From sequence record NC_048779.1: DNA of 64,000 nucleotides. The stretch is one strand, 5' to 3'. Positions 3,001 to 25,472 of this stretch are shown one piece after another. The position numbers were made by a program, and so were the translations under genes. The notes beneath the pieces are model-generated. The model made no database searches. It was not told the DNA's origin and saw only the letters and a list, made by a program, of their open reading frames with translations. Positions within the stretch are counted from its first letter, which is position 1; each line of letters starts with the position of its first letter.

Positions 3001-6000
3001 TTAAAGTCACTCTTAACGTTGACTTTATACTCGAAAGAGTTTCTTGCACCCGGAGTAAATGTCAGGCACGCGTCAGGCACTACGTCCCCGTTACCATCTT
3101 TAACAATCACCCCTACGGTTGCACTTCTTCCTTTAGCTGGCTTAGGTGTACTGTAAGGTAACAACGTAACGTTAAGTTGATCGTAGTAATTGATTTCTTG
3201 AGTATCAATCACCACACCGTCAACCTTAAAGTTGTAAGGATGTTTACCGGCTGGTTTACCTTCTCCCAACTTAGCAACAAATCGACCTTTCGGTGTGATG
3301 TAAACTGGGTGGTTTTGTGTGTCAGAAATTTGAGCTTCCACATAACCGGTAAGTACCGCGGTATCCCCTGACCCATCGATAGCCGTACCATCAATCCACT
3401 GATCAAGGTTGAATCGGATAAACGCATTACCACTGTTATTGAGTGTGTTGAATCGTGTTGGTTTAACCAACGCGGTATCCTCATCCCAAGTCATTGTGGT
3501 TACCATCGCCGCGTTTTCACCAAAGATCACCAATTCATGATCACCTGAGGTTTGTGTAGGAACACGGTATAGGTTGAAACGTTCGCCGTAGATATCAAGA
3601 TCACTTTCTATTTCAGTTAATACGATCTCTTGAAGTGTTCGCTTGTCAAAGGCACGAATCACAGCGCCAGTTACATGTGACTTCGTTTCCCATGGAGTAA
3701 CATTACCGCCCGGGTCCGTTGCGGCTGGACCAGACGCATAACTCATGTGTGATAGAGGACTGAGTTTAATCACACCGTCTTCACCATCCGCCACATGTCG
3801 AGTCGCTTCAAAACCATGCAGCTCTTCAACCACTGGATTTGTCACACCCCATTCAACAATGGCGTTTGCTGAAATACCTTCGCTCACAACAAAATAAGTC
3901 AGGTCACCAGAATTAGGAGTGTCTGGATTATCGTTTACCATAAACTCAACAATACCGAACTCATCGGTAGTTTTAGTATCCACCAATAGTCCTGTATCAC
4001 TTCCTAAGCGTAGTTCTATTGATTGACCTACCATTGGTTTGTCTACGGAGTTAATGCCGGCAAACGCAAGCGTAGCGCTTCCTGTTTGTTTAACTTTACT
4101 GGTCGAATAAGGAAGTGTACGGAGTTCTTTAAGTACGATAGGTGCTTCGGTCACAAACACCGTGCTAGGGATTACAGCGCTGTTCGTCGCAAACACCAAT
4201 TCGTTTGCACCAAGATCATAAGGACCGATGTTGATGTCAAACGTGCCATCGCTGTTGATGTTGCCGTTGAACATCTTTCCACCTAGAGTGGACTTGTTAA
4301 ACACCACCAACCACATGATAGAAGTGTCGGATTGACTTAAATTACCAACTAACTTACCGGTTACCTGAATAGGTTGACCGACGTAGGTTTGAGGACTGAT
4401 CACTAGGTCAGCGATTTCAATTGCTGAATTCTCAGTATCGGACGCCCAACGAATGGTGCGGTTGTCTTTTAAGTCTGTGCCGTTAATAAACGCAGTCACT
4501 TCATCTTGCGGTGTACTTGGTGTAGTAATAGTATCTGGGTTGTAACTTAAAACAAGTTCAGCCACACCAAACTCATCCGTTACCACCTTACCGTAATCCA
4601 CACCTGCGTCGTAAGTGTTTGTAAAGTTAACCAACATCCCCTCGATGCCATTAGAGTCAGCATCTTTCACCACAACAGCCAAGGTAGCGTTGTGGGTCTT
4701 CGCAACTTTGTCACCAGTGTAATTAGCGAATTCAATCACCGGGGAAGCGATAAACTCTACTTGGTGAACGTAAAGGTTATTGCCGTCGTCTAAGATGGAG
4801 TAAGTCTTAGTCTTAATGGTATCGGACGTTGCTTCAAAAGAGAACGACCCAGATGGCCCCACTTTAACTTTAACTGTCGTCGCATTCTCGTCACGGATGG
4901 AAAGTTCCATTTCTTCCACAGGACGAACAACGTTACCTTCACTGTCAATGATTGAGCCAGATACCGTAACCACAGTGTCAACAACTGCTGATGTCGGTGA
5001 GGTAGGGTCCAATTGGATACCAGCAGGTTCATTGGCAGTAGCACCACCCCAAGTTAATGACAGCTTACGTTGAGCATTCCCGCTGTAGAATACCACATCG
5101 TGGTCTCCGTCCGGCATGGTAGGGAAAGAAACTGAGTAAGTCCCTTTAGCATTCTCAGTGATTTCAGCAAGGTAAGATTCGTAGAAGAAACTGTTCAGAA
5201 CCACCACACCACAATCGGCAAGGTCACCTTTCGTTCCATCTTGGTTTAATGCTTCTAGCTCAATTGATAAACGCCCGCCAGTGTTAACTGGGTTAGTGTA
5301 ATCGAAGTAACCAAACTCACTGATTACGTCACGATCGTTCACCCACGTTATACCACTAGATTCCGTATTCGGACCCATAACACAACGAACTTCGTGATAA
5401 CCACTTAGTTGAACACCATCAATTTCTGGTGGGAGTGAATACTCCACTATCCCGTTATCGTCAGTTAGTTTCGTTTCCAGTTCTTTCCATTCCCCGTTTA
5501 CACGAACAGACAGACTTGCCGGAATACCAACTACAGGAATTAATTTGGCGTCTTCAATCAAGCTTGCACGGTAAGCAACTAACCCTTCATCACCAATGTA
5601 GATGTTCGGGTAAGAAGAATAGTTCAAACGTTCAGTACGTAAACCCGGAGGGAAACCGATCGCCCATTCTGTTGCTTTCTCTAAAGTAACACCAGTGGTA
5701 CCAAGAACAAGGTTGTGCTTACCTTTTTCTAACGGACCAAAGTCAAAAGAGAAAGTACCGTCACCGTTAACCGACGACATATCCACTGGAGTATGTCCTA
5801 GCGTGTGTTTGTCGAACACTCCTAAGCGAGACGGTTTAAACCCATTCCCGCCTTGATCGTAAATACGACCGCTAATGGTCATGGCGTTTACGGTGTCACC
5901 CACACTAGGGAAGGACATGTTACGGAATTCACTAGCCACAGAAGAACCACTGAAAGAGACTTCATGGTCAGCAGACTTGCTTCCAAACTCAACACCCGTT

Positions 6001-20131: not shown

Positions 20132-21277
20132 TTATTCCTCACTATCGTCTGGAGCTTTATTTAACCATGCCTCTCGATCATTAGTGTAATTTACATTACC
20201 TTCGTTATCTTCGATAGCAAAGAGTAAACGCTTAGGGTCGTCCTCCAATTTATCCAGTGAACCTAGAGTCAGGACGTCCCCTACTTTGACTAACTCTCCG
20301 TTCTTCATTTTACTGCACGCGGATTCGATGGCTTTTAGCTGGTCATCGGACAAGTCAAGCTTATATTGATCAGTAGTAAAGTCAATAGACTTAGCCCAAT
20401 GCATTTCCAACTCGACTGTTCCACGTTGAGTTAGGTAGTTCTGGTATGCCGGGTCATCAATCATTTGCACAGTCGGAATACAGCCACGAAGTTGACTTAA
20501 ACCGGGTTCCTCTACTCTAGTTAGTCGTCCCATCATCTGAATATTATTTCGGCTGAACACGCCTTTGCCAAAACAAGATTCAATCACTTCACTATAGGAC
20601 GGGTAACGTGTCTTAATAATGTTTCTCATCCAAGTACAGTAATCGGTAACACGCAACGTCACCCACAAGTCTTCTGGGTAAGCGGTAAAATCCGCTATCC
20701 ACCCCATGGAGTATTTAGTTAGAGGTTCGTTGAAATACTGTTGGTGACGACGACGGTAACGAGTCAACAAACGACGGTGAGTGGTTTTAGTGTAATCACG
20801 GAACCATTTGTGTTTGCGACGAACGTAAGGCTCTGGTGCATCATACCACTCCACCATGTGGTTGTAGAACTCCGGCTTAGATACTCCGAATTCCTCACAC
20901 ATCCATTCGATCAAAACCATGAAACGAGGATGAGGGTTTAGGATGCCAACCTTACCGTACCCTAAAAGGTCAAGCGTTGAACGACACTCTGCTTCATCTA
21001 ATTTCCAAACCTTACAAGGGTCATTAGGATAACCGGTCGGGTAAATGGTGTCGTAGTACACACCTTCGAACTCCAACAAACAGTGGTGTGGGTGAGAAAC
21101 CATATTGACATCAATACGGAACTTCTCCTTTAAGATATGCTGCACTAAAGTAGCAACCATGTAACAGTAACCTGTATTAAGGTCTTGAACCGCACGGTGA
21201 GGTTTGTTGTTACTGATCTTCGCGTAAGCGTCAACAGTTTGGAATAATAGTTCGGTGATTTGTTTTGAATTATACAT
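20132..21277 (-). CDS. Hypothetical protein with N-terminal transglutaminase/papain-like Cys-His-Asp domain, 381 aa
   Basis: NTGYCYMVA...HPHHCLLEFEGVYYDT motif, shared with 21665..22234. Confidence 0.55.
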   Translation of the reverse strand: MYNSKQITELLFQTVDAYAKISNNKPHRAVQDLNTGYCYMVATLVQHILKEKFRIDVNMVSHPHHCLLEFEGVYYDTIYPTGYPNDPCKVWKLDEAECRSTLDLLGYGKVGILNPHPRFMVLIEWMCEEFGVSKPEFYNHMVEWYDAPEPYVRRKHKWFRDYTKTTHRRLLTRYRRRHQQYFNEPLTKYSMGWIADFTAYPEDLWVTLRVTDYCTWMRNIIKTRYPSYSEVIESCFGKGVFSRNNIQMMGRLTRVEEPGLSQLRGCIPTVQMIDDPAYQNYLTQRGTVELEMHWAKSIDFTTDQYKLDLSDDQLKAIESACSKMKNGELVKVGDVLTLGSLDKLEDDPKRLLFAIEDNEGNVNYTNDREAWLNKAPDDSEE

Positions 21278-21662
21278 TTTGTTTCTCCAGTTCTAAAACT
21301 TTAGTTAAATACCCGCTAAGTTTCTTACCGCTTGATTTGATTTCTTCAATAGACATCCAATCTTGGTAAGGGTGTTTGGTTGGTTCCATGTTTCGAGGTT
21401 CTTCGTTTAACACTACTTCGTATAGAGCTTGATCGACCACACCTAAACTTTCGTAGGTTTGCCGCCACTTAGCTAAGCGCTTACCGATCCAGAGTTTACT
21501 TACACCCAGTTCCTCTTTTAATTCCCGAGCCAATCCAACCACGTCACGCTCGTTCTCATCTAGCTTACCACTAGGTATAGTCAGTCCACCAATCTTCTTA
21601 TGCCCTTGGATTAACAACTTACCTTCCGCATTCTTAATTAACGCACCTACTGTGAACAACAT
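21270..21662 (-). CDS. Nudix hydrolase, 130 aa
   Basis: Perfect Nudix box GKLDENERDVVGLARELKEELGV (GX5EX7REUXEEXGU). Confidence 0.92.
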   Translation of the reverse strand: MLFTVGALIKNAEGKLLIQGHKKIGGLTIPSGKLDENERDVVGLARELKEELGVSKLWIGKRLAKWRQTYESLGVVDQALYEVVLNEEPRNMEPTKHPYQDWMSIEEIKSSGKKLSGYLTKVLELEKQNV

Positions 21663-21664
21663 TC

Positions 21665-22234
21665 TTAATTACCTAGGTTCTTATCTTTAACTTCAACAAC
21701 ATGAACATGTTCGGCATCGAAACCGGGTGAGACTCGATACTCCACGTCAATGTCCATGACTTCTAAACGATTTTGTTCTTCCATACTACTGCTGATAACA
21801 ATAGGTTCAGGTTCACCAAATTCATGTCCTATGCACGTCATCGGTACTATCTCGTAATGACCGCATACATGGTGGATAACTGAATGAATATCTTTATCCC
21901 AAGGAGCTAATCGAAAATAATCCAAAGGCACCACTTCATTGCGGTGTTCACTCGATACACCATAAAACGGTAAACTTAATACGTTCCCGCCATCAAAGTT
22001 AAGGGTGTCATAAACTTTACCGTTATGCATCAAAAATGTGTGATGCGGGGAGTTTTGTATTTCCACTGTAAAGTCAAACGCTTGTCTAAGTACATACGCT
22101 GTTAATTGCGCTATCCAGATGCAATCCCCGTTATTGGCTTTTAATAAGGTTTCCTCCCATACCTCGTTTCCGAGGTATGAGTGGTACGCCTTAATCACAT
22201 CCAGTAACACCAGCTTAATGGTGTTTTCTTTCAT
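21665..22234 (-). CDS. Transglutaminase/papain-like Cys-His-Asp protein, 189 aa
   Basis: NNGDCIWIA...SPHHTFLMHNGKVYDT motif. Confidence 0.55.
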   Translation of the reverse strand: MKENTIKLVLLDVIKAYHSYLGNEVWEETLLKANNGDCIWIAQLTAYVLRQAFDFTVEIQNSPHHTFLMHNGKVYDTLNFDGGNVLSLPFYGVSSEHRNEVVPLDYFRLAPWDKDIHSVIHHVCGHYEIVPMTCIGHEFGEPEPIVISSSMEEQNRLEVMDIDVEYRVSPGFDAEHVHVVEVKDKNLGN

Positions 22235-22236
22235 GA

Positions 22237-22953
22237 CTATTTCCTATCAATCTTTTCTTCCTCGACCTCCTCCGGAAGCTGGTGTCCACTTAACTCGTAA
22301 AGAGTTCGCTTATAACGTTTCACTAAGTTCTCACGTTCTTCTTGTGTGATCTTAGGGAGTTCGCTAAAGACCATGTCTTTCCCGGCTAATAAGTATTGGA
22401 AGTTCCCACCTACTGTTTTATCGACCCCAGACATCATGAGTAGTTTAAAGGCCGTGGCAAGTCCTTGACCGGTCACCGCTTTGTCGTCAAAGAACATCTT
22501 GGTCAGAACTCTGAATGGTCCAGCACCACTACCTATCGATGCGTAGTTAGCCAACTTAGAAATTTCCAACGACCGTCCGTCAAACCAAACAGTAAAGAAT
22601 TTCTCACCAACCCGGAACATGACCTTTAGACTAATGTCCGTATCCATGTTAAAGTTAATCAAAGATAAGTCATAGTCACCCGGAACGAATTTCTCCAAAC
22701 CAAATAAAGATAACATGTCTGTAGGGTCTAGTTTAAACATCTCCACCGCATTGGTGTTACCAGCAACACCCATGAAATCCGGAGTGTGTTCTTCTCCTTT
22801 TTCATCAACGTAAGGGGGAGTTAAGTTAGGTGCTGGCATGATCTTAAGATGATCTTTCGTCGCAACTCTAGGACGACGGTCTAATTCCTCAGCACAACTT
22901 ACTGCTTTAGAATCAGCCATCATGTCCCCTAAAAATCCAACAACTAAAGTCAT
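22237..22953 (-). CDS. HslV/proteasome beta-like Ntn peptidase (A1), 238 aa
   Basis: Thr after initiator Met, MADS, LKI, GVAG, SIGSG, D.TVGG: the motif order of Thr-nucleophile proteasome-like peptidases. Confidence 0.7.
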   Translation of the reverse strand: MTLVVGFLGDMMADSKAVSCAEELDRRPRVATKDHLKIMPAPNLTPPYVDEKGEEHTPDFMGVAGNTNAVEMFKLDPTDMLSLFGLEKFVPGDYDLSLINFNMDTDISLKVMFRVGEKFFTVWFDGRSLEISKLANYASIGSGAGPFRVLTKMFFDDKAVTGQGLATAFKLLMMSGVDKTVGGNFQYLLAGKDMVFSELPKITQEERENLVKRYKRTLYELSGHQLPEEVEEEKIDRK

Positions 22954-23594
22954 ACTAATTCTCCTAGTTTCTCGTCAAGGCTAGCGACCCAACTGTCTAA
23001 CATCTCAGGGTTTGGATTCATGGACATCACCACACTTAAATCTCGTTCAGCGGAATAAACCTTAGCTAATTTAGGGGTTTCTTTCCTGTAACTAGCTAAC
23101 ATCCCCCATTGCAAACTTTGAGTGTTGTCTAAGATACCAACGACTTCGCTTGCAATCGGAACACCTTCTTCTTGGTCATTGTCCATGAAATAAGCACCAT
23201 CGTCGCTAACATCGTGAAACTTAATTCGCAATTCCCGGTTGTTAAGTTTTAAGGTGACCAAAGTACCTTTGTCAGTCAATCCTGCCCACTGGTGTTCTCC
23301 CATATTGCTATGGATCATAAGTGGGTGGCGAAGCGGGTATACGCCCTCTTCTAATTTTTCGACTTGATACAACCACATGATGTCGTAAAATTCATTAGAA
23401 GAGAAATCCTTCCCCTCGGCATCATCGTAAGCCGCACCATAAATGACATGTTCCGTCGTGCCTTCCTCACGTTCAATAGGAAAGTCTTTGCTCCAAACTG
23501 GTCGACTGGCGGAAGTCGTCATACACCAAAAAGACCCACGTTCCGTTACCGCCGTTACCATGAAGCCGCTTTTATCTACAGTAATGATAGACAT
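22950..23594 (-). CDS. Partner of Ntn peptidase (B1), probably a degenerate paralog, ~214 aa
   Basis: Paralog of 24305..24943; translationally coupled to A1 (ATGA overlap); shares a [FY].[LV]E....G.Y.[LM] motif with the A genes. Confidence 0.6.
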   Translation of the reverse strand: MSIITVDKSGFMVTAVTERGSFWCMTTSASRPVWSKDFPIEREEGTTEHVIYGAAYDDAEGKDFSSNEFYDIMWLYQVEKLEEGVYPLRHPLMIHSNMGEHQWAGLTDKGTLVTLKLNNRELRIKFHDVSDDGAYFMDNDQEEGVPIASEVVGILDNTQSLQWGMLASYRKETPKLAKVYSAERDLSVVMSMNPNPEMLDSWVASLDEKLGELV

Positions 23595-23597
23595 CAC

Positions 23598-24305
23598 TTA
23601 ATCCTCTTTCTTTTCTTCAACTGGTAATGTAAGATTGGCTTTAGCGTACAAATTCTTACGGTAATCCTTAACCAGTTTCTGTTTAGCTTTATCGGTAAGT
23701 TTAGGTGGTTCAGCTGTTATGTCGGAGGAGCCTTTATCCACCACCCATAAGTCACCACCGATGGTCGGATCGATACCCGATAACAATAAGAAATTTAACG
23801 TAACGAATTTCTTATTAAGGGAAGGTTCGGTCGTGTTGTATAGCACCCTTAACATATAGTTATACATCCCCGTCCCGCTACCGATGATCTCGGTGTCCTT
23901 TAATTCCCCGATGTTAAGTTTATCCCCACTGTACTTTACTCGGAAACATTGTTCGCCTATTCGAAATAAGGCCCAACATTCACGATTAGTGTTAACTTTT
24001 AAATTACAGGTTTTAAGATCGTAACTACCGGGAACAAAGTTAGTCAAGCCGAACGTAGTTAGCAATTCATTTAAGAACAAAGTCAATATTCTGACACCAA
24101 AAGTTGAACCAGCGGTGCCCATGAAATCTGGACTTTTTAAAGTCCCACTACCGTCATCAAACTTAGGGGTGTCACTAGGTGCAGGACAAATCTTCAAATG
24201 AGATTTAGAAGAATCTCGACCTCGGTGTTCAGCCTCCAGCTCAATACCGTGACGACTTAATGAGTCAGCCATGAAAGTCCCTTTATGAAAAACAACAATG
24301 GTCAT
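23598..24305 (-). CDS. HslV/proteasome beta-like Ntn peptidase (A2), 235 aa
   Basis: MTIVV..MADS, LKI, GTAG, IIGSG, D.TIGG; clear paralog of A1. Confidence 0.7.
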   Translation of the reverse strand: MTIVVFHKGTFMADSLSRHGIELEAEHRGRDSSKSHLKICPAPSDTPKFDDGSGTLKSPDFMGTAGSTFGVRILTLFLNELLTTFGLTNFVPGSYDLKTCNLKVNTNRECWALFRIGEQCFRVKYSGDKLNIGELKDTEIIGSGTGMYNYMLRVLYNTTEPSLNKKFVTLNFLLLSGIDPTIGGDLWVVDKGSSDITAEPPKLTDKAKQKLVKDYRKNLYAKANLTLPVEEKKED

Positions 24306-24943
24306 TACAACCCCTCCAATTCTTTTTCAAATTTACCCACCCATTCTTCAATGAGACCCTCACTATAACTAATCGCACGTACTGTAACGGAGTCAGTATC
24401 CCGAAAATAGGTTTTCACCATCTTAGGCACTTCAGCGCGCATGTTAACCAACATCACCCAGATCAAGGTTTCATCGGCAGAGAAAATACCGAAAGTTTCA
24501 GCCACACGAGTTCCTTCATTATCCGGATCAACAAAATAGTTCCCTTCTGTACCATGGTCTTCTATGGTCAAAGTGGACCCAGATAAACTGATTGTAATGA
24601 TTCGTCCTTTTTCGGTGATTCCGTACCAGTGGGTTAATTCCTGTCGGTAGAAATAGCACGAAGGGGGACTCATTTTGTATTCCCCTGCTTGTAACTCTTC
24701 CAAATTAAAAGTTTTAGCGACATCTAGCATATCGCTACTGGAAAGCTCCATAGGGTTATCATAAAGGATGCGGTTACCAAACATGACTCGCTCAGGGTCA
24801 CCTTCTTGTGGACGGTATTTTAACTGGTCTCTCCATACCGGTTTCCCACCTCTATTTTCACAGGTCCAAAAATCCCCTCGGTCAGAAGTAAATTGAACTC
24901 GCATGTAATCGGCATTCGCTTGCAGATAGTAATCTTTCATCAT
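24305..24943 (-). CDS. Partner of Ntn peptidase (B2), 212 aa
   Basis: Paralog of B1 (T.[ED]RG.FW, PVW, G.T[DE]KG, YF[MV]D); TAATG overlap with A2. Confidence 0.6.
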   Translation of the reverse strand: MMKDYYLQANADYMRVQFTSDRGDFWTCENRGGKPVWRDQLKYRPQEGDPERVMFGNRILYDNPMELSSSDMLDVAKTFNLEELQAGEYKMSPPSCYFYRQELTHWYGITEKGRIITISLSGSTLTIEDHGTEGNYFVDPDNEGTRVAETFGIFSADETLIWVMLVNMRAEVPKMVKTYFRDTDSVTVRAISYSEGLIEEWVGKFEKELEGL

Positions 24944-25399
24944 TTAACTCCATGAATAGAAGTGAGCCGGTTCGTCGGCACGGTAAGCCTCAATCCAACT
25001 CATGAAAATTTGAGAAACTTTATTAGCGCTAGGTTTCGTGTAAATGTCACGGCGGACAAAGAAAGTAACCACGTTAAGGGGGTCGTTATTGTTAGCAAGA
25101 GATCGTTTTCTCGCAAACTTCATTTCAACCACATTGGGTTCGTCAAAAGTAATCGTGAGTAGTTGATACAGCTTAAGAAGTTTTTCAAACGCTTCCAAAC
25201 TATAAACCATTTGGATGTAGTAAACTACATTGTTGTTAGACTCATGTCCCTCACAACAAGACATTGTCCCCAAATAACGACATCGGTTTAATGATTGAAT
25301 GATTTCACGACACGAAACGTCACAATGCTCAAGAATTGATTTTTCATTTCTTTGATAATAAATCTTTTCTAATTCAAACATTTTTGGTTCAGTTTGCAT
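24944..25399 (-). CDS. Hypothetical protein with D..[IC]...I..LN....T.SCCEGH motif (TYW3-like N-terminus?), ~151 aa
   Basis: Likely start MQTEPK at 25399 (AAGGAG SD); motif seen directly; fold assignment tentative. Confidence 0.5.
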   Translation of the reverse strand: MQTEPKMFELEKIYYQRNEKSILEHCDVSCREIIQSLNRCRYLGTMSCCEGHESNNNVVYYIQMVYSLEAFEKLLKLYQLLTITFDEPNVVEMKFARKRSLANNNDPLNVVTFFVRRDIYTKPSANKVSQIFMSWIEAYRADEPAHFYSWS

Positions 25400-25438
25400 G
25401 GATGACTCCTTAATGAATTTTTTAAAGTGCAAAAAGGA

Positions 25439-25458
25439 GTGAGTCCCGAAGGACTCAC
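25439..25458 (-). terminator. Intrinsic terminator after thyA
   Basis: gtgagtcc-cgaa-ggactcac; UUCG loop on minus strand, followed by TCCTTTTT. Confidence 0.75.
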
Positions 25459-25472
25459 CTAAATTTAATTAA

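Follow-up and report, generated by a model that had tools for sequence, protein, structure and literature searches.

Two tandem gene pairs in Vibrio jumbo phage USC-1, each predicted to encode a divergent proteasome-like Thr1 enzyme and an inactive paralog of it

Positions 22237-24943 of the window, by which we mean the whole 64,000-nucleotide stretch of record NC_048779.1, carry two tandem copies of a gene pair, each consisting of a B gene followed by an A gene. According to structure prediction and residue conservation, the A proteins are very probably highly divergent proteasome-family enzymes that use an N-terminal threonine (Thr1) and possess a complete catalytic set. The B proteins are, in all likelihood, catalytically inactive paralogs of A. 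We also lean towards the view that each B-A pair gives rise to a co-translated, hetero-oligomeric proteasome-like peptidase, the two pairs representing two isoforms. The window derives from Vibrio phage USC-1 (MK905543), a phiKZ-like jumbo phage with a 238-kb genome that infects Vibrio alginolyticus and belongs to the genus Aphroditevirus, subfamily Gorgonvirinae. The cassette region is 100% identical to the USC-1 record and is identical in phage 5 TSL-2019 as well.

Organization of the cassette

The interval is filled exactly by four tightly packed minus-strand open reading frames (ORFs) in the transcription order B2-A2-B1-A1, just as an earlier note, based on the sequence of this DNA, had described them:

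B2, 24305-24943, minus strand: 212 amino acids (aa), non-catalytic proteasome-fold paralog, first gene of the upstream pair, PHROG 33796
A2, 23598-24305, minus strand: 235 aa, proteasome-like Thr1 peptidase paralog (predicted), catalytic set intact, PHROG 25187
B1, 22950-23594, minus strand: 214 aa from the ATG, non-catalytic proteasome-fold paralog, with an alternative in-frame GTG at 23597
A1, 22237-22953, minus strand: 238 aa, proteasome-like Thr1 peptidase (predicted), start overlapping the B1 stop

GenBank labels all four genes of USC-1 'hypothetical protein', and the two PHROG families to which they belong (phrog_25187 for A, phrog_33796 for B) are both of unknown function. The stop of B2 and the start of A2 have 1 nt in common, the A2 stop abuts the GTG-ATG of B1, and the stop and start of B1 and A1 overlap as ATGA. 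A GGAG/GAGG-like Shine-Dalgarno sequence lies 5-9 nt upstream of each of the four starts. Given such overlapping or abutting junctions, together with a ribosome-binding sequence at every start, translational coupling along the cassette is plausible.

Structure and catalytic residues of the A proteins

Modelling A1 with AlphaFold2 from an alignment of 18 sequences, without templates, gave a structure with a predicted local distance difference test score (pLDDT) of 83.8 and a predicted template-modelling score (pTM) of 0.80. An independent model of A1 from BFVD agrees with it at a template-modelling (TM) score of 0.95. When the PDB was searched with our model using Foldseek, 234 matches were obtained at an expectation value (E) <= 1e-3, the best having E 2e-7 and a target-normalised TM-score of 0.58. 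The list is headed by 20S beta subunits, and every one of the top 50 is either a subunit of the 20S proteasome, in most cases a beta subunit, or Anbu, which appears at rank 25. By these matches the predicted fold of A1 is the alpha-beta-beta-alpha sandwich known from proteasome beta subunits and HslV, the fold of proteasome-like N-terminal nucleophile hydrolases (MEROPS T1 in the broad sense). Among the viral models of BFVD there were 30 matches at E <= 1e-3. These include proteins annotated as 'proteasome subunit beta' (Caulobacter phage CcrBL9) and 'ATP-dependent protease subunit' (Serratia phage Moabite), and also uncharacterised jumbo-phage proteins with the A fold from Noxifer, Special G, RisingSun, Acinetobacter ME3 and Aeromonas 4L372XY. 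The highest target-normalised TM-scores of A1 (0.69-0.71) belong to phage proteins that are about 145-153 aa long, a few of which carry the annotation of a proteasome subunit. Moabite contributes two of the BFVD matches, and a protein of phage 201phi2-1 narrowly misses the cut-off (E 1.6e-3).

The residues conserved in A fall where a proteasome-type active site would have them. A1 and A2 are 37% identical across their full length (E 3e-52), and both carry the motif series M-T at the start, ADS, K37, GxAG (62-65), GSG (141-143) and D178..GG183. In the 18-sequence family alignment, which reaches down to 23% identity, M1, T2, K37, G65, G92, G141, S142 and G183 are invariant, and D14 and G182 nearly so; A2 keeps T2, D14, K37, G65, G141 and S142. 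In the model the conserved residues sit after strands S1, S2, S3, S4 and S8 and helix H4, at places equivalent to the family positions Thr1, Asp17, Lys33, Gly47, Ser129 and the Asp166/Ser169 region of the proteasome (PMC8665760). Both the motif series of a Thr-nucleophile peptidase and the N-terminal nucleophile (Ntn) fold had been claimed for A in the earlier note; the former is present, with core residues invariant or nearly so across the 18 family members, and the latter agrees with the full Thr/Asp/Lys/Gly/Ser set and with the proteasome and Anbu structures that head the Foldseek matches.

The start of A deserves separate comment. The position of the start codon is fixed by its overlap with the upstream stop, and Met1-Thr2 is present in 18/18 family sequences. 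Methionine aminopeptidase takes off a Met that stands ahead of Thr, so that with such a start no propeptide would be needed to expose Thr1. Removal of Met1 would leave A with an N-terminal Thr nucleophile. A global profile-profile alignment (hhalign) of the A family with HslV, although not statistically significant, is strictly collinear over the following elements (A first, then HslV in full-length numbering):

T2, aligned with T2
D14, aligned with D18
K37, aligned with K34
GVAGNT (62-67), aligned with GFAGGT
IGSGAG (140-145), aligned with IGSGGP
VGGN (181-184), aligned with IAGD

In A, unlike in HslV and beta subunits, about 13 additional residues are inserted between K37 and strand S4. Helix H2 is missing from the model: a single kinked helix (67-82) is followed by a strand and loop at the H2 position, where a conserved FGLxxFxPGxY segment plus loop (residues 84-108) takes its place. 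At the C-terminus there is a helix and then a charged disordered tail, which is acidic in Aphroditevirus and strongly Lys-rich (KKKSKKKPKKK-type) in distant members (alignment columns ~245-277). The composition of these tails suggests that they may have a role in docking or in nucleic-acid or shell binding.

Relationship of the B proteins to A

B1 and B2 are clearly related to each other (30% identity, E 9e-31). The relationship between A and B is much more distant: it is not significant by BLASTP, and profiles of nine sequences each gave an hhalign probability of only 23%. Once both families had been deepened with metagenomic relatives, the probability rose to 94.9% (E 4.5e-8) over 177 columns, matching A 39-222 with B 30-209. 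In addition, the hidden Markov model (HMM) of the A family, searched against all USC-1 ORFs, matches B2 at E 4.6e-4, and in BFVD the 211-aa B2 ortholog of phage 2 TSL-2019 has a model to which that of A1 is similar at E 2.6e-5. Our AlphaFold2 model of B1 is of moderate confidence (pLDDT 64.2), with the N-terminal third poorly modelled; its strands and helices follow one another as in A. For B, the support for a proteasome-type fold is thus indirect, coming through the profile alignment with A and the structural matches.

At the same time, all the catalytic motifs of A are gone from B. The positions matching Asp14, Lys37 and Gly-Ser141/142 are not conserved, and residue 2 varies among S, A, M, Q, P and F, so an N-terminal Thr/Ser nucleophile is not a feature of the family. 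Ser2 of B1 was considered as a nucleophile and rejected: not even the orthologs of B1 conserve it, and B has no counterpart of the Asp, Lys and GSG positions. Thus the paralogy of B1 and B2 and their loss of motifs, both pointed out in the earlier note, are borne out by the 30% identity, the missing ADS/Lys/GSG equivalents and the variable residue 2. The mid-protein motif that it had seen in all four proteins is likewise real, since the A-B profile alignment (E 4.5e-8) runs straight through it. Its 'alpha/beta-type' wording, by contrast, fits poorly. The model and alignment of B begin at strand S1, residue 2, without the N-terminal H0 extension of alpha-type subunits. B therefore starts like a beta or HslV subunit, and 'inactive beta-like subunit' is the more fitting description. 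An hhalign comparison of the B family with HslV gave no match.

Distribution and co-inheritance of A and B

The two families are rare. By tblastn against 50,697 phage records, A was found in 15 records corresponding to nine phages (USC-1, 5 TSL-2019, 2 TSL-2019, PDCC-1, Aphrodite1, phiKT1019, phiKT1028, pTD1 and VP4B), all of them 236-242-kb jumbo phages of Vibrio or Photobacterium. A HMMER search of 1.84 billion cluster representatives with the A profile yielded only 13 proteins at E <= 1e-3, and word-indexed searches of 5.8 billion proteins returned only 4-5 relatives for A1 or B1. Pattern scans of IMG/VR found nothing beyond four known Aphroditevirus genomes, and the same kind of scan yielded no relative in JGI metagenomes or in GTDB, where one genome stood for each species; the 15-sequence alignment of B has no stretch conserved enough for such a scan. 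Within USC-1, the whole genome contains no paralog of A or B beyond these four.

Wherever A occurs, B accompanies it. B is present in the same 15 records, at 23 places for each gene, with adjacent coordinates and always in the order B then A. In the metagenomic and GenBank relatives that could be read, a gene of about 205-215 aa that aligns as B lies directly upstream of every A, overlapping or abutting its start. The earlier note had proposed to check whether A and B always co-occur side by side in related phages, and no exception turned up among the 15 records and the readable relatives. Gene orders in a set of further records, which we denote L009 to L017, are as follows:

L009: B-A-B-A
phiKT1028 (L010): thyA-B-A
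L011: thyA-x-B-A
L012: B-A-thyA
L013: B-A
L014: B-A-B-A
L015/16: B-A-B-A
L017: thyA-B-A-B-A

Counting USC-1, 2 TSL-2019 and PDCC-1 together with L009, L014, L015/16 and L017, the B-A-B-A arrangement is found in at least seven phages or contigs.

Selection and history of the duplication

All four genes appear to be maintained. The ratio of nonsynonymous to synonymous substitution rates (dN/dS) is 0.05-0.07 for A1, 0.08-0.16 for A2, about 0.08 for B1 and about 0.11 for B2, with dS near saturation in these comparisons. Since the values for B (0.08-0.11) are comparable to those for A, B is not decaying, and purifying selection acts on all four genes. The A and B of one pair diverge at nearly equal rates, both far faster than the neighbouring thyA. 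In trees of either family, the upstream and the downstream copies form separate well-supported clades within Aphroditevirus plus L009. The duplication is therefore older than this group and may have had a single old origin, as far as can be read from trees in which only this shallow split is resolved, the deep nodes being unresolved and subject to attraction of long branches.

Neighbouring genes and possible partners

On its upstream side the cassette is flanked by genes for an HD phosphohydrolase and thymidylate synthase, with a DHFR gene further upstream in relatives. Downstream follow orf189, a NUDIX hydrolase gene and orf381. The features surrounding the cassette are:

orf381, 20132-21277, minus strand: second Cys/His/Asp-domain protein, two genes downstream
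NUDIX gene, 21270-21662: between orf189 and orf381
orf189, 21665-22234, minus strand: adjoins the cassette downstream, conserved, N-terminal domain with a Cys/His/Asp pattern
orf162, 24944-25432, minus strand: between thyA and B2, annotated from the ATG at 25399 (151 aa), Cys-rich motif, poorly conserved
hairpin, 25438-25459, minus strand: strong, 9-bp, GC-rich, followed by a T-run, in the 40-nt gap between thyA and orf162, which it fills

The products of orf189 and orf381 share a domain at their N-termini, about 75 aa long, that carries the pattern G-x-C ... H-H ... Y-D-T (E 8e-8). Pfam offers only a sub-threshold, Phage_YunG-like match for it (E 0.02). With an HMM of this domain we detected it downstream of B-A in L009, phiKT1028, L012, L015/16 and L017. 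The domain is also present in gp119 of Erwinia phage Special G (L028:4226-4765; E 3e-13 to orf381 and 1e-5 to orf189), whose gene lies directly downstream of gp118, an HslU-like AAA+ ATPase gene. In other words, a protein with the Cys/His/Asp pattern adjoins proteolysis-type modules in two distant lineages of jumbo phages, and it is possible that orf189 and orf381 are Cys-peptidase or transglutaminase-like partners of such modules.

Searching all USC-1 ORFs by phmmer with E. coli HslU and HslV gave no match at E <= 10. Elsewhere in the phage collection, HslU-like genes occur in 164 other records, with Erwinia, Salmonella and Pseudomonas phages accounting for many of them. Within the reach of a single-sequence search, the USC-1 system appears to lack a phage-encoded ATPase cap.

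The small orf162 was examined as a further member of the cassette and set aside: it is absent from L009 and L017, lost in Aphrodite1, and matches only PHROGs of unknown function. The hairpin next to it could be a terminator, an attenuator or an RNA-processing site. The number of sites found by scans for sigma-70 promoters and terminators did not exceed that in shuffled sequence, and such scans have no relevance for phiKZ-type transcription. In some relatives the thyA beside the cassette is interrupted: in phiKT1028 (L010:5253-7294) it is split in two by a GIY-YIG/I-TevI-like homing endonuclease gene, and in L012 (2023-3434) by a small remnant of a homing endonuclease gene.

Discussion

Based on these data, we propose the following scheme. 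A would be the catalytic subunit, with methionine aminopeptidase exposing Thr1 without a propeptide, as in HslV. Its Asp14, Lys37, Gly62-x-Ala-Gly65 and Gly141-Ser142 would serve as Asp17, Lys33, the oxyanion Gly47 region and Ser129 of the proteasome. B would have arisen by duplication of an A-like gene, after the FGLxxFxPGxY segment had replaced helix H2, and would then have lost its catalytic residues. It may have been kept as a non-catalytic partner providing a scaffold, gating or specificity, much like the inactive beta and alpha subunits of 20S proteasomes. Overlapping stop and start codons would ensure coupled and roughly equimolar synthesis, B being made first. The old duplication of the whole B-A unit would have produced either two isoforms of different specificity or one mixed particle of four subunits. 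Because the phage is apparently without an unfoldase of its own, the particle would act on peptides and unfolded proteins or borrow a host AAA+ partner. That A and B form an obligate hetero-oligomer seems to us somewhat better than an even bet; the peptidase activity, the ring architecture, the substrates and the timing that we assign to it are presumptive.

The principal alternative is that A works as a homo-oligomeric peptidase similar to HslV or BPH, and that B is its regulator: an inhibitor, an assembly chaperone, a substrate adaptor or a decoy for host complexes. We regard this as unlikely. The prokaryotic HslV, BPH and Anbu are all homo-oligomers (PMC8665760), B evolves as fast as A or faster, and the N-terminal third of B is poorly modelled. 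A B-before-A order would also suit a chaperone or inhibitor that has to be produced first. However, B retains the full-length fold of A, its length and its FGLxxFxPGxY segment, which is what would be expected of an equivalent subunit in the same lattice, and the strict 1:1 copy number and co-duplication suit stoichiometric partners better than a regulator and its target.

A second alternative would retain the proteasome fold of A and assign it a reaction other than proteolysis, such as that of a connectase-like ligase or transpeptidase, or of a small-molecule amidohydrolase tied to the neighbouring nucleotide metabolism. Connectase demonstrates that the fold and the Thr/Asp/Lys set can support ligation (PMC8665760). 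The cassette lies between the HD-ThyA and NUDIX genes, with DHFR upstream in relatives, and the insertions and missing H2 of A may preclude a closed degradation chamber. On the other hand, the top structural matches are all proteolytic subunits or Anbu, with no other Ntn enzymes among them, the conserved GSG and Gly65 fit a peptidase-type active site, and the neighbourhood may be nothing but a co-transcribed block of genes. On balance, we consider a non-proteolytic A improbable. Still less credible is a resemblance of fold only, with A and B as non-enzymatic structural or scaffold proteins whose motifs serve folding: it accords with the missing sequence-level family match in Pfam and PDB searches, but Thr, Lys and Gly-Ser that are invariant in A down to 23% identity and wholly lost in B are the signature of a catalytic site retained in one lineage.

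Several observations weigh against a proteasome-like hetero-oligomer and need to be set beside the evidence for it. Pfam reports nothing at E <= 1, PF00227 included, for the four cassette proteins or for any member of the 18-sequence A family, and phmmer and profile searches of PDB sequences with A and B returned noise only, with no match to the proteasome family. The hhalign comparison of the A family with HslV is not significant (probability 11.7% local, 34% global), the HslV alignment being low in diversity, with homologs that are all at least 86% identical. As no sequence method links A to the family, its assignment rests on predicted structure and on the collinearity of motifs. The structural evidence has weak points too: with 20S beta subunits A1 reaches moderate TM-scores (0.5-0.58), the A model is without H2 and has two insertions, and some such variants may fail to assemble into rings (Fuchs et al. 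2021, PMC8665760). For the moderately confident B1 model the best PDB matches are almost all Anbu chains, and these are not significant (E 0.047). Furthermore, adjacency of A and B in related phages is partly inherited synteny and does not amount to independent evidence of interaction. As for the two isoforms, phages of the Tidunavirus type have a single pair, and Aphrodite1 is a natural single-pair variant in which A1 is intact, B2 and orf162 are deleted, A2 is cut to a 48-codon C-terminal remnant, and an intact B1 ORF is left unannotated in GenBank (L004:4704-5348 for B1 and 5352-5498 for the remnant). The loss in Aphrodite1, where the second pair went as a unit, and the single-pair phages thus imply that this pair is dispensable.

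The same results call for one correction. A had been labelled 'HslV-type' in the earlier note, and this label is not supported: the HslV profile match is the insignificant one just given, the leading structural matches come from 20S beta subunits, Anbu and small phage homologs, H2 is missing from the model, and no HslU-like gene was found among the USC-1 ORFs.

If the hetero-oligomeric scheme is nevertheless correct, one may speculate further. A virus might have independently evolved the division of labour seen in proteasomes, in the form of an obligate particle of a Thr1 enzyme and a pseudo-enzyme that has been duplicated, works together with the Cys/His/Asp proteins, does without a phage ATPase and, in the course of an infection by a nucleus-forming jumbo phage, remodels proteins of the host or of the phage itself. 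We offer this full picture as a tentative and rather doubtful extension of the scheme.

Comparison with known systems

The closest conceptual parallel is the 20S proteasome, which likewise has active and inactive paralogs, both of one Ntn fold, encoded together and whose catalytic set is Thr1/Asp17/Lys33/Gly47/Ser129. The differences are considerable. B lacks the alpha-type N-terminal helix, A lacks a propeptide, and in the phage the inactive gene comes first, followed by the active one. Neither A nor B is recognised by PF00227, H2 has been replaced by a new conserved segment, and the phage system is virus-encoded. As to the doubling of the pair, Rhodococcus has two prcB/prcA operons, prcB1A1 and prcB2A2, so that the pair is present twice there, as it is in the phage cassette.

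HslV (MEROPS T1B) resembles A in its Met-Thr start without autoprocessing, in the collinear D, K, G-x-A-G and I-G-S-G elements and in a bacterial-type context. A differs from it in being about 60 residues longer, with two insertions, a C-terminal helix and a charged tail, and in a profile match that is not significant. Moreover, A has a dedicated inactive paralog beside it, whereas HslV has none, and an HslU-like gene was not found in USC-1. Anbu is a structural match of A and the best, though weak, match of B. It is a bacterial homo-oligomer of one active subunit, in contrast to the phage pair, and its ATP-grasp and alpha-E operon partners are absent from the cassette. Anbu operons also include a transglutaminase-like Cys protein, which is reminiscent of the Cys/His/Asp genes downstream of the cassette.

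The nearest known relatives of A and B are probably the PPH and RPC phage homologs. Like A, these are phage-borne, as are the AAH proteins. Helix H2 is missing from PPH and RPC as it is from the A model, RPC has a C-terminal extension, and PPH is a single gene of about 140 aa (PMC8665760); it is with phage proteins some 145-153 aa long that A attains its best target-normalised TM-scores. Fuchs, Alva and Lupas 2021 (PMC8665760) do not mention a conserved inactive partner or a duplicated pair for the phage homologs. PPH and RPC are thus single genes by description, whereas A is paired with an inactive paralog and duplicated.

To our knowledge, phage proteasome homologs have so far been catalogued only computationally, as single genes (PPH, AAH) none of which has a known function, and we know of no description of a virus-encoded two-subunit protease of this kind for phages. 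The cassette repeats, in a small and tractable form, the step that lies behind the alpha and beta, and the active and inactive beta, subunits of 20S proteasomes. It would offer a minimal model for the origin of hetero-oligomeric proteasome-like particles and of pseudo-enzyme subunits. It would also add a new activity, proteolytic (or that of a ligase), to those of the phiKZ-like nucleus-forming phages employed for phage therapy in aquaculture, and it would give names to PHROG families 25187 and 33796. Set beside PPH and RPC, probably their nearest homologs, A and B in our view form a new branch of the proteasome-like superfamily, one that is very divergent and comes with a pseudo-enzyme partner of its own. 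What sets this branch apart from the known phage homologs is a catalytic subunit too divergent for Pfam/HMMER, locked to a dead paralog, in a pair that has been duplicated.

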